Source: Perkinsus chesapeaki ATCC PRA-425
Lineage: Eukaryota; Protista; Perkinsozoa
Direction: 5' to 3'
NCBI GenBank assembly: GCA_013115145.1
Contig: JAAPAO010000363.1
Span: 1-35,968 of the forward strand
DNA length: 35,968 nucleotides
The notes under the pieces were generated by a model. That model was not told the DNA's origin, ran no database searches, and saw nothing but the letters and a program-made list of their open reading frames with translations. Below, in pieces: positions 25,763-33,447 of this stretch; the first letter of the stretch is position 1, and each line of letters starts with the position of its first letter. Made by a program: the position numbers and the translations under genes.

Positions 25763-26500
25763 TCACCTAGGAGATATACTGAAATCCTTATGGAATAATT
25801 TATGCTCCGGTTTCTCGTCGAACAATGGATGCAACCACGCATGTAGTTTGACAGTCCCGATAAGTTCCCAAGTGAAGAGGGAATGATCCTTGGTGTTCAT
25901 AGTGAGATCTAATTCTATAGCAAGGCCCTCATTACGTTCATCGCCGGTGGACTTCCGGAAAGAGGCATCGAGCCCAAAGTCATAGTTTGGTCCGATGTGA
26001 ACGTGAACAACTTTGGTAACCGGTAGAGTGAAGGACTCATCAAGGACGCTGGCTTCAGCAGTCGCTTTCACTTGAACTTCAGCATTCCAGTTACCTGTCT
26101 TCTCATCGAACTTGCCGCGACCATCGCCAACTGTTTCAGTGCAGAGCTCGACGGAGCCTTCTAATAGTCCTTCCGCGAATTCCTTATCAAAGACATTAGC
26201 GCAGCCACCACCGGTAATGTTGAGACCCGCGGGTTGCGAACCATTAAGTGCCATCTCGATGTGAAAGTGAGTTGACTTGGTAGTTTCCTTGGCATCGAAC
26301 AGATAGACCGTCATGTTGACCTTCAAACCAGGAGTGTAGCTTAAGGTACCCAAGGCGCAGAACGGTTCGGAATCTGGTTTCTTCTCGGCTGTGCAATCGG
26401 CAGGGAAAGCAAACGGTGTAGCGTCCAGACGCCTCAGATATAGCGCCCCGCCGAGGGCTGTTCCGCAGCCTAAAGATACAAGGATGTTACAAAACTTCAT
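25763..26500 (-). CDS. Family B copy 1: secreted beta-rich protein of unknown function with LRRLD after the signal peptide (intronless)
   Basis: 245-aa ORF with an N-terminal hydrophobic signal, four conserved Cys and two paralogues in the window. Confidence 0.88.
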   Translation of the reverse strand: MKFCNILVSLGCGTALGGALYLRRLDATPFAFPADCTAEKKPDSEPFCALGTLSYTPGLKVNMTVYLFDAKETTKSTHFHIEMALNGSQPAGLNITGGGCANVFDKEFAEGLLEGSVELCTETVGDGRGKFDEKTGNWNAEVQVKATAEASVLDESFTLPVTKVVHVHIGPNYDFGLDASFRKSTGDERNEGLAIELDLTMNTKDHSLFTWELIGTVKLHAWLHPLFDEKPEHKLFHKDFSISPR

Positions 26501-26675
26501 TAGAAAGAAAAGCTGAAATCAAGGGTATGATTGCTAGTGCGAGCGTGCTCTGTGCCGACTAGCATGGCGAGTATCCCACAGCTTCAGCTCTCGTAAAGAC
26601 TCAATACTAAAGAGGTCTTCAATGAGTGGGAACGAAGGAGTCTGACTTGTGCATGCGTGCATTCGGTGACCCTCT
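26500..26675 (-). promoter_or_regulatory. Conserved upstream element of family B (CATT[C/T]GGTGAC core, ~145-160 bp upstream) plus a conserved CAG-CTTT acceptor-like site ~15 nt before the ATG
   Basis: The core is at ~26660-26670, ~30580-30590 and ~33592-33602. Sense-strand CAGCTTT...TAATG precedes all three ATGs. Function is inferred. Confidence 0.45.
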
Positions 26676-29600
26676 AATGGCTTGAACGCTCGCGAGTAGG
26701 CCGCCGGGCGGCTGCCGCTCCCCTGCGAGTACAAATCTTCAGCACTATCTCTGAGCTAGGTATAATTGGACGAGTATTAAGTCGACGAGGAAGGGCTCAC
26801 CTCGCAATCCATACCCGCATGCAACGCTCAAGGGAGTAAAGTCTCGTTTCAGTGCTATGGTGGTAGTAGTACACATTCCTCGTGTCACAGGGACAAATTA
26901 CATAACACGCTAAAACCGGCTTTGGGTTCTGCGGAATGAGACAAGGGGCGGGGTTTGCGTGTCGGTGCGACACTGTCGCATGCACCGGTGGCTGCAACGG
27001 CGTGTGCGCTGCAATATGGAGATGCTGCCGTTTCAGCAAAGAACCGGTATATCTTCTTCTAACTCGCTACACTGTGCGGCTTGTACACGCGTGCATATTC
27101 GACATGCATTCCCATTGCTGAGTATAAGGATGAGAGAATCCCTCTCTGCCCGTCCTCCCAAGTGGTAGCGGCTTGGAGTCCACGCCGTGGACGGGTGAGC
27201 AGTGCTACCTGCTACCCAGCTCAATGCCATTGAGTCAATGGGCGAAGCCTCGCGGTAAACTGCGAGCCAGACTGGTTCAACCAGTAGCGACAAAGGTGCA
27301 TCCCTCGGCAAAAGTGGGCGAGAAGAAATGAGAAGAATGGCAGTCAAGTAACCGTCAGTGTAGTTCTCAATACCACAGCCGCCCTTGGACTCCAACTTGA
27401 AGTCCGAGGGCCCTTGCTGAACAGGGTTCCCGGCCGCGCCTTCTGGGATAATCTACGATCCATGATTATGGTGGTAAATAATCAAGTGAGTCGGACCCAC
27501 TGATTCCTATCCGAAGCTCATAAAGGCCATGCCGTGAAGTTCACGGAGTTCAACTCTAAATTATTGTACAAGTCCCCAAGTAATGAACAAAGCTGACCGT
27601 ATGATTGAGGCGCACCTTAAGATCCCGCAAATGAAAGTGAGTGAATCACATTAGTGCGAATACCTGTCTAGAGCGGGAATCATCGCGCGTTAACCGGGCT
27701 CGAAGTGCACACGGATAGCTATTCTACGGCACAAGTCGGGGAATTCACAAGTTGTGAATCACACTGTGATTATCACAGCTCGTGAATCTTTGATTCATGC
27801 GCCGAATACTAGCTCTGTACGGGAAATGATACAGCCCATAGAATAGTTCCTTAACTGGCAACTTGTCAGGAACAGTGTCAAGTTGTCGGTGATATCGGCA
27901 TAGCAGGCGCAAAAGAATAGTACAGGCCTGCACCGTGCAGGCTGCACTGTAACGTGTTGATTCGAGACTGTTGAACTGTTCACGCTGAATATAAAATGGG
28001 TGTTCCAATTGAATGAGAAAAAATGGCTTCTCTATGAAGTTTGAACTTACGACCTTTCTGAGTTGAATCCATATGATTCCACGTGTGTAAGACAGCGCTG
28101 CTGTTGCAGCGGTGGGAGTAACCTATACGGGCCTCAGTGCTCACTGCGCTGTGCAACGACTGCGAGGATTCCCCTGAAAGCGGAGCGTTTCCCGAAGGTT
28201 TTGGTGGTGGAATAGCTCCGGGTTTACGTTCTGGATTTGGATATTCGCCTCTGGCTTTACCAACAGGCGCCTTTAAGCACTTCCGCTGATGCGTCCGTGC
28301 CAGTGTCCGAGCTCGGGATTCGCACGCTGTCGTCTGCGTCACGCTGGAGTAATGCCTTCTTACTAAACGTGAGGTTGGGCCTGGCAGTTCAGTTAGTGGA
28401 ACTTAGCGGGGAAATGTGCATTTTCAACTACAGTTGTGATTTGTGCCTGCCAAACCTAACGTTGTGTGCGGGTCGTGAACACCTGGTCCTGGCGTTGTGC
28501 GCAATCATTGTGTCTCCACTAGGGATGTTCGAACCCTCTGGCAATAGTCAGCCATTATCTCTGCCGCCCTTGTTGATGATCTACAGAAGAGCAGATGACT
28601 CATTTTTTGGTAAGCTAGAGAAGAGAAGCCGAAGCCCTAATGATTCCTACCCTCTGTGGTTCCTAGACGCGTCTCACCTTCCTACTTTCCTGTTGCTGGT
28701 GGTACACTCATGGGGATGAACTCAAAGCAAGGGAGGATCAACAAAGGCTTCTATCCGTTCTTCAGCTTTGGGGGGAGAATTAGCTACGTAATAATCGATT
28801 AACCGCACAGAGTCGAGTGGCGGCGGTAACATTTCCCATACCGGTGTACAACAGCAATACAGTCCTGGCAGCACGATTCATATGTCATGGACCCCGTAGT
28901 CCATGTAGTTCCGAAATAAACGAAGGGGGCATCTTATTAGAGTTGATATAAATTCATGCTCTTTCGCGATTTTAATAAGCTTCTGATACACTTCGCCTAC
29001 GCCTCTGAGATTGGTTCGACCAACTTGGTTGGTCTAAAGAGAGCAGGGGGGACTCTCGCTTTTGGGGCGAGAAAGGAGAAAAACACACCTTTCAGGTGTC
29101 ACCTGAGATGTGTGCGCAATTCGACCAGCGCATATCGGAAGATCACATCATGTGATTCACATGCATGACGAAAGAACTTCAATCGAATGACGACTTGCCA
29201 TTGGCAAGCTCCTCGTGATCTCGGACAGGGAGTTTGCCTCCCAGGACCAGCACCGTGAGCCTAGAACTCTCCATGACAAAACTCGGCGCAACTCGTGTTT
29301 GAAACGGACAAAGCCCGCGCTAAAGCCCGGGGACACTAATACTTGTGGTTGGGACGTTACCTCACTGATCCCTCCGGCTGACCGCTAAAACTAGGCCCCA
29401 CGTGGAAGGACCGGCTGGAGTGTGCTGAGCAGCTGGCAGCTGGAAGCTGCACCGGCATCTCACACATTTGAAACTTATGGAATTGAAAAGGAATCATAAT
29501 ATTTTACAGATATAACCTAAGATGTCTTCTTTATCCAATGACATGGGACTGGCTATGGACAACCCCACTGACTCAATGTCACTAAGCATCTAAAAAGTGC

Positions 29601-31970: not shown

Positions 31971-32721
31971 CCTCGAATCCTCTGGTCTAAGCTCCTAATC
32001 CCGCTACAGTCGTCGGCCTCGCATAGTAATATCGATAGCCAGATCCATATGGTCTGGTAGGCTTCCCAGGGCTACATTGCCCCTTTTACAAACAGCGATA
32101 CTGATCCGGTGCTATCTATAACTTCCCTTGCTTCGATACACCTACACCCTACGTCGGTAATTTAGAGCATTTAATGGCGCACTGTCAGCCTGAACTCTCT
32201 ATGACAAACTCAAAGCAACTCGTGTTTGAAGCCAACAAAAAGCTCTTTACCCAACTGCATACTAAGCGCGCAATTGTCACACTGCAGTGAGGGCTACTGA
32301 CCTCACGGGTAGCAGACCGCTGAGAACTTAACTACAACGGAGGTACAGCTGGCATAAAGCCGGACAATTATCCCACGCTCAAGCGCGGGAAACTTACTAC
32401 TTGTGACTGGAGCGTAACAGCACGACCTCCTTCGACTGGCCGCCGAATTCCGGTCTTACAGAAACTGAGCAAATGTTCAGCATCTGAGCTGGCATCTCAC
32501 ACATTCAAAAGGCAGATTTATGTGGGACATTATTTTACACATAGATTGTAAGATATCTTCTCTAGCAAATGACATGGGGCGAACTATATACAACCTGATT
32601 GAGTACCGGAAGCCTTCGTGGAAGCTCGGCGAAATGATAAACAACCAAAAGTACGTGTGAGAAGCATATCCAAATCTCACACTGAGGACCTCACACCGCT
32701 TCAGACACCAAAGTTCGGCGT

Positions 32722-33447
32722 TCACGGAGGGGATATACTAAATTTACGCTTAAAGATGTCAACCGTTACTTTTTTGTCAAAGAAGGGGCTGAACCACGCA
32801 TGCAGGCCGGCACCCGCGGTAAGTTGCCAAGTGTAGAGTGAATGGTCTTTGGTGTTAAAAGTAAGATCCAATATGAGCCCAAGACCCTTGCTTTTATCGT
32901 CGCCCGTAGTCTTCTGGAAAGACGCGTCAAGCCCGAAGTCATTATTCTGCCCGACGTGCGCCTTGACAACCTTGTCAGCATTGAGATTGAAAGATTTACC
33001 GAATGCACCGGCTTTAGCAGCCGCTTTCAATTGAACCGCAGCATTCCAGTTGCCTGTCGCCTCATCGAACTCGCCGCGGCCGTCGCCAACTGTCTCAAAG
33101 CAGAGCTGGACGGTGCCATACAATACTACAAAGTTCTTGTCAACGACATTAGCACAGCCACCAGCAGTGATAGATAAACCGGTAGGTCGCGATCCACCAA
33201 GTGTCACCTCGATGTTAAAGTGGGTGGACTTGGTAGTTTGCTTCTCATCGAACAGATAGATCGCCATCTGAAATTTTTGTTCAGACGTGGTACCAACGGC
33301 GCAGAAACGCTCAGAACTTGGTTTCATAGCGCCTGTGCACCCAGCAGGGTAAGCGAACGGTGTAGATTCATCTAGACGTCTGAGAGATAGTGGTCCACCG
33401 AGGGCTATTCCATAGCCGGAAGATACAAGGATAATAAAAAGATTCAT
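32722..33447 (-). CDS. Family B copy 3: most diverged paralogue, with LRRLDE
   Basis: The ORF is 32722..33495 and the aligned start is the ATG at 33447 (MNLFIILVSS). The same four Cys and motif order are retained. Confidence 0.88.
   Translation of the reverse strand: MNLFIILVSSGYGIALGGPLSLRRLDESTPFAYPAGCTGAMKPSSERFCAVGTTSEQKFQMAIYLFDEKQTTKSTHFNIEVTLGGSRPTGLSITAGGCANVVDKNFVVLYGTVQLCFETVGDGRGEFDEATGNWNAAVQLKAAAKAGAFGKSFNLNADKVVKAHVGQNNDFGLDASFQKTTGDDKSKGLGLILDLTFNTKDHSLYTWQLTAGAGLHAWFSPFFDKKVTVDIFKRKFSISPP

Follow-up and report, generated by a model that had tools for sequence, protein, structure and literature searches.

Two motifs described from apicomplexan parasites, the Toxoplasma export element (TEXEL), cleaved by ASP5 of Toxoplasma gondii, and the Plasmodium export element (PEXEL), cleaved by plasmepsin V (PMV), resemble a short Arg-Arg-Leu (RRL) motif located directly behind the leaders of the “family B” proteins of Perkinsus chesapeaki. 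These proteins are encoded within a 35,968-nucleotide stretch of DNA of strain ATCC PRA-425 (contig JAAPAO010000363.1, positions 1 to 35,968), which was analyzed as a whole and is referred to below as the window. PEXEL motifs are usually found some 15–30 residues downstream of the signal-peptidase site. ASP5 is intolerant of any substitution at P3, P2 or P1, and it acts at internal sites too, e.g. the internal TEXEL of Toxoplasma MYR1 (PMC4764566). The PEXEL has also been described as a maturation site for non-exported proteins (PMC10900883). A literature search found no paper on PEXEL, TEXEL or ASP5 in Perkinsus. The reading that we favor, with a probability of roughly 65%, is that the RRL of family B represents a local variant of an R-x-[LM] element belonging to the protein family defined by Pfam DUF6740 (PF20525), and not an N-terminal export signal.

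The family B genes, given as open reading frames (ORFs) with lengths in amino acids (aa), and their L-R-R-L-D stretches are as follows:

25763..26500, minus strand: family B copy 1, a leader-bearing ORF of 245 aa containing only the C-terminal domain (C-domain) of DUF6740
29696..30436, minus strand: family B copy 2, an ORF of 246 aa, 87% identical to copy 1
32722..33447, minus strand: family B copy 3, an ORF of 241 aa when read from the second in-frame ATG, with 61% identity to copy 1
26423..26437, minus strand: L-R-R-L-D of copy 1, residues 22-26 (RRL at 26426-26434), codons ctg agg cgt ctg gac
30359..30373, minus strand: L-R-R-L-D of copy 2, residues 22-26, codons ctg aga cgt ctg gac
33370..33384, minus strand: L-R-R-L-D of copy 3, residues 22-26, followed by E, codons ctc aga cgt cta gat

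The three copies can be aligned end to end. Direct reading of the DNA confirmed two statements of a preliminary description of this locus, namely that LRRLD is present in all copies with the codons listed above and that copy 3 carries a full RxLxE (RRLDE), which is complete in this copy only. The residues flanking the motif vary (ALY or PLS before it; A, G or E after it). RRL occupies residues 23–25 in 3/3 window copies, and the identical position claimed for the motif therefore stands, with the qualification that in copy 3 it depends on the use of the second ATG (33447); if translation started at the upstream in-frame ATG at 33495, RRL would be at residues 39–41. The distance between the hydrophobic core and RRL in copy 3 is the same whichever ATG is used. 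Each copy opens with a short hydrophobic leader with small residues at positions −3/−1, in agreement with the secretion-type leaders that had been predicted. A fourth copy, on contig G000:C3499, is 83% identical and likewise reads LSLRRLDGP.

Comparison with TEXEL reveals the same tripeptide, in proteins that probably enter the secretory pathway, and a homologous protease lineage in the genome; the action of ASP5 at the internal site of MYR1 also matches what would be required by the position of the element in full-length DUF6740 proteins (long forms). However, RRL is not kept in the nearest family B paralogue or in relatives from sister species, DTA/DSS stand at the catalytic positions of the protease homologue, and no RRL excess was seen in the other leader-bearing ORFs scanned. 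The PEXEL pentamer is fitted by copy 3 and by 15/23 long forms, whereas P2′ is A or G in copies 1 and 2. Unlike a PEXEL, the long-form element is placed ~300 residues from the leader, and that of family B ~5 residues past the likely signal-peptidase site. As for the uncharacterised DUF6740, copies 1–3 match the C-terminal half of the profile above the cut-off, but lack its N-terminal 300 positions (a LolA/ependymin-like domain and most of a linker). The oomycete RxLR motif and the R-x-x-R sites of proprotein convertases find a counterpart in the long forms, which bear R-x-[LM]-R after an invariant Asp-Trp; this motif is absent from family B.

The R-x-[LM] element of the DUF6740 family

Copies 1–3 matched DUF6740 with scores of 68–70 bits (gathering cut-off 27) and E values of ~1e-19 (1.6e-19 for copy 1). 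The match is restricted to profile positions 306/311–511 of 532 (311–510 in copy 1), and in copy 3 the alignment begins at the first Arg of RRL, which corresponds to profile position 306. At least 41 paralogous matches were detected in the P. chesapeaki genome, and a hydrophobic leader is present in every paralogue examined. The family comprises short forms of ~245–295 aa and long forms of ~545–585 aa matching the whole profile; a 543-aa paralogue covers positions 1–532. One long paralogue encoded in the same assembly shows 100% identity to P. chesapeaki FOL47_004885, confirming the perkinsid source that had been suspected. A word search retrieved hypothetical proteins of Perkinsus marinus and P. 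olseni, and long forms occur in all three species. The literature search yielded no paper dealing with DUF6740 or with the family members of P. marinus.

The long forms consist of a signal peptide, a LolA/ependymin-like N-terminal domain (Foldseek similarity to LolA and ependymin-related proteins, E 1e-4, probability 1.0), a conserved linker of ~90 aa and a C-domain of long beta-hairpins, whose first strand bears F-x-[FY]-P-x-x-C. Within the linker, the invariant Asp-Trp is followed by R-x-[LM]-R, located ~31 residues upstream of the R-x-L junction (L021:1432-3060, minus strand, plus 20 relatives). Both linker motifs are also present in a 313-aa DUF6740 fragment (P0026) labeled Oxyrrhis marina in UniRef, 46% identical to a P. 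chesapeaki long form; it could be a real early-dinoflagellate member of the family or a Perkinsus-like contamination of the Oxyrrhis marina transcriptome.

The register of the element was counted in 49 family sequences (23 long and 26 short forms) anchored on F-x-[FY]-P-x-x-C. Relative to this anchor, Arg is found at −8 in 26/49 and Leu at −6 in 28/49 sequences. R.[LM] occurs within 12 residues of the strand in 34/49 and exact RRL in 15/49, the middle residue of R-x-L being R in only 14/49. When the C-domains were clustered at 50% identity, R.[LM] was kept in 9/13 clusters (chance expectation per sequence ~3.5%) and RRL in 4/13 (~0.1%), three of the clusters with exact RRL sharing <50% identity with family B. 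The recurrence of R-x-L across the wider family is thus far above chance.

In an alignment of long forms from the three Perkinsus species, the junction Arg (R319 of the 543-aa protein, P0007) is nearly invariant. The junction reads RAL, RQL, REL, RRL, RHL or RRM, with a single Arg in most cases. R.[LM] is retained in 20/23 long forms and 14/26 short forms; the short forms, which would most need an N-terminal export signal, retain it least. The alignments indicate that the family B RRL is homologous to this internal element of the full-length proteins, and the comparisons establish this homology, show that the element lies internally in long forms and reveal its patchy loss among short ones. 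The preliminary description had taken the position behind the signal peptide as the mark of a signal. This interpretation is not supported, because the motif has an internal counterpart in the long family members: RRL directly follows the leader since family B consists of the C-domain only, which makes its location an architectural by-product.

The following course of events would account for these data. The junction Arg and Leu of the long forms sit 8 and 6 residues, respectively, before the first C-domain strand, near residue 319. The family B genes are C-domain-only paralogues in which the leader was joined directly before the junction, bringing RRL to residues 23–25, and RRL would have remained unchanged in the four young copies since the whole gene is under purifying selection. 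The element itself may lead into the beta-domain or act as its hinge; alternatively, it may mark a point at which the two domains of long forms are separated by processing. Its presence in short forms may be a carry-over under weaker constraint. Among these roles, we consider a structural lead-in the most probable, although at slightly less than even odds; a protease site is possible, and the lack of any present function is the least probable.

Structure prediction with AlphaFold2 (AF2) yielded for copy 1 an all-beta model with long antiparallel strands (mean predicted local distance difference test score, pLDDT, 87.6; predicted template modeling score, pTM, 0.81). Residues 1–24 of this model have pLDDT <50 and are disordered, and the first strand spans residues 28–32, which would place RRL at the edge of the fold. 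The model of a long form is weak (pLDDT 64.9), with residues 243–338, including the junction motif, predicted at low confidence. A comparison of the C-domain fold with the PDB by Foldseek gave no match at E up to 0.001, and nothing convincing was found with VIA-align (generic beta-barrel or beta-meander matches, Z <6) or in the ESM Atlas (none). A structural element is favored by the amphipathic pattern following the junction Leu in the long forms and by the fixed register in most members.

Several observations weigh against the view that the family B RRL is a family element and not an export signal. The motif region is of low confidence in both AF2 models (residues 7–24 in the short form and 314–332 in the long form); since it is poorly modeled in both, a structural lead-in and an exposed protease site are not separable on this basis. 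The RxLx[EQD] pentamer is complete in 15/23 long forms. In two clades exact RRL occurs at a shifted spacing, 5 and 12 residues ahead of the strand, a behavior more often seen in linear recognition motifs, and in the short forms R-x-L is often retained despite the Gly/Pro-rich stretch that follows it. Finally, a gene related to PMV and ASP5, described below, is present in the genome.

Conservation of LRRLD among family B genes and their relatives

In the three-way alignment of copies 1–3, 138/246 columns (56%) are invariant, and LRRLD belongs to a set of seven invariant runs spanning at least five residues, each of which shows one to four synonymous differences. Pairwise omega (the ratio of nonsynonymous to synonymous substitution rates) is 0.25–0.47 across the whole family B gene. 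The synonymous-only codon changes, which the preliminary description had read as purifying selection on the motif, occur throughout the gene and therefore mark the gene as constrained, not the motif specifically. Taken alone, the LRRLD pattern among the family B copies is only weakly above chance.

The next paralogue (C2594, L005), which is 56% identical, intact and has an omega of 0.22, reads PPTLLGG at this position, i.e. TLL in place of RRL. A related sequence from the Joint Genome Institute (JGI) has APHLGG (PHL). The closest P. marinus relatives, PMAR010972 and PMAR010973, have LRRAAG and LRQAAG, and the closest P. olseni relative has a different N-terminus in which RRL is not present. 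Conservation of the P3 Arg and P1 Leu thus fails in the nearest paralogue (TLL), in its JGI relative (PHL) and in the closest P. marinus proteins (RRA, RQA). Loss of the motif in more distant paralogues, which the preliminary description had regarded as contrary to its proposal, is indeed observed in the nearest relatives (TLL, RRA, RQA), while R-x-[LM] is still found in 34/49 sequences family-wide.

These data bear on the possibility that RRL has no present function in family B and merely reflects the phylogenetic inertia of four young copies of a slowly evolving gene. Such an explanation would fit the high proportion of invariant columns (52–56% among the copies), the six other invariant runs of at least five residues, and the fact that addition of the 56%-identical C2594 paralogue to the alignment abolishes LRRLD but leaves three invariant runs in the core of the protein. 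Approximately half of the short forms, moreover, have no R-x-L and are nevertheless intact. However, copy 3 is separated from the other copies by a synonymous divergence (dS) of ~0.8 and the leader around its motif has diverged, and exact RRL persists in the three clusters that share <50% identity with family B. We regard inertia as an unlikely explanation, albeit marginally the most probable of the alternatives.

A PMV-like protease and the processing alternatives

A second alternative is maturation of the PEXEL/TEXEL type, in which a PMV/ASP5-like membrane protease would act within the secretory pathway and cleave R-x-L behind its Leu, freeing the beta-domain of the long forms and trimming ~7 residues from family B proteins to give an N-terminus at D26. 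RRL conforms to RRLxx, the strict consensus of ASP5, and the capacity of ASP5 for internal cleavage (PMC4764566), the pentamer of the long forms and the predicted flexibility of the motif region would all be compatible with this model.

The search for an ASP5/PMV orthologue, suggested in the preliminary description, identified a single PMV/ASP5-like gene (L059:1307-3351; G000:C3082:23750-25794, plus strand). It has four exons and encodes a leader exon, a Cys-rich insert of PMV type and a C-terminal membrane anchor. The exons were searched individually, and PMV was the best PDB match of each; the whole-protein search was performed with the deposited model FOL47_009153 (P0182), whose best PDB match was PMV at E 5e-30, compared with 7e-7 for BACE2. 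The start of this deposited model lies further upstream, and the leader exon (L059:1307-1459) is missing from it. The nearest relatives outside Perkinsus are dinoflagellate proteins (Effrenium, Polykrikos) of the same architecture, and the enzyme lineage therefore predates Apicomplexa. A word search for orthologues in other Perkinsus species gave P. chesapeaki entries only.

The catalytic motifs of the PMV-like protein read D-T-A-S and D-S-S-S. Both Asp residues are kept, and the DSS motif was confirmed by an MMETSP transcript that is 97% identical. PMV and 10/10 dinoflagellate relatives have DTG and DSG instead of DTA and DSS. Gly-to-Ala changes in this motif may abolish the activity of some members of the pepsin family.

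The 41.7-Mb assembly contains at least 126 pepsin-family (PF00026) and at least 108 subtilase (PF00082) matches, many of them in tandem. Other aspartic proteases were considered as PMV/ASP5 candidates and rejected: (i) a membrane-anchored protein (C80) is cathepsin D/proteinase A-like, with PMV outside its top 60 PDB matches, (ii) the multi-exon genes L060 and L061 are of ordinary pepsin type, and (iii) the long open frames L051-L054 are part of an expanded family of secreted pepsin-like proteins.

The frequency of RRL outside the family was examined in 265 kb of sequence, a small sample biased towards proteases. Among 34 non-family leader-bearing ORFs, two RRL matches were present in residues 16–65, i.e. 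1.2e-3 per position, compared with 0.9e-3 in all ORFs. One of them (AWRRLSS) lies in a subtilase encoded in the window (22443-23465, plus strand; Peptidase_S8, E 4.8e-35), 2.3 kb from copy 1. This RRL is located ~20 residues before the catalytic Asp, inside the conserved lead-in of the catalytic domain, and is therefore not a leader-proximal signal. The DUF6740 ORFs contained 18 RRL occurrences (1.1 expected), compared with 11 in other ORFs (5.3 expected), the latter count being comparable to those of LRR (8) and RLR (9); the RRL excess is therefore a property of the DUF6740 family.

Maturation by the PMV-like enzyme, for which the single gene with leader, membrane anchor and dinoflagellate relatives would provide a candidate, is thus opposed by (i) DTA/DSS in place of DTG/DSG, (ii) the occurrence of TLL, PHL, RRA and RQA in the nearest relatives of family B, set against the intolerance of ASP5 at P1–P3, (iii) the background rate of RRL in the other leader-bearing ORFs and (iv) the short distance between RRL and the likely signal-peptidase site. 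We judge it improbable. The broader proposal that the R-x-L junction of DUF6740 is a true cleavage site of the PMV-like protease, in a pathway that would be older than apicomplexan parasitism, dating back to the base of Myzozoa, and of which the family B proteins would be minimal substrates, appears improbable. Export of family B proteins into a host finds no support in the present data.

Cleavage after Arg-Arg by a kexin/furin-like subtilase of the secretory pathway is very unlikely: subtilases are numerous, one of them is encoded close to copy 1, RR is retained not only in family B but also in the clades L006-8 and L013-17 and in a single P. marinus relative (LRRA), and the long-form linker offers a second basic motif (R-x-[LM]-R), but the family-wide pattern is R-x-L and not RR (middle R in 14/49), most long forms have a single Arg, and no kexin-type orthologue was singled out among the subtilase matches.

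Other features of the window and significance

Apart from family B and the subtilase, the window contains a tandem of leader-bearing genes, termed family A (557-1609, 2753-3805 and 4718-5716, all on the minus strand), encoding proteins of 332–350 aa with a hydrophobic C-terminal tail resembling a glycosylphosphatidylinositol (GPI)-anchor signal. No Pfam match was obtained for the family A copies. Behind the leader, one copy reads RALAD and the other two QASAD; the RALAD motif is therefore not conserved. An ORF at 34776-35114 (minus strand) gave weak matches, below the Pfam cut-offs, to a zinc ribbon and to the first zinc finger of IFT144 (WDR19).

Should the R-x-L junction prove to function as a PMV/ASP5 site, this effector-maturation pathway would be known for the first time from outside Apicomplexa, and the origin of PEXEL/TEXEL export would become experimentally accessible in Perkinsus. 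An RRL behind a leader in the P. chesapeaki genome can be a relic inherited with the family rather than a signal. What the present analysis documents is a conserved junction element in an uncharacterised, Perkinsus-centered family of predicted secreted proteins that combine a LolA/ependymin-like domain with a beta-domain, together with a PMV-like protein that is unusual in that its catalytic motifs are altered.

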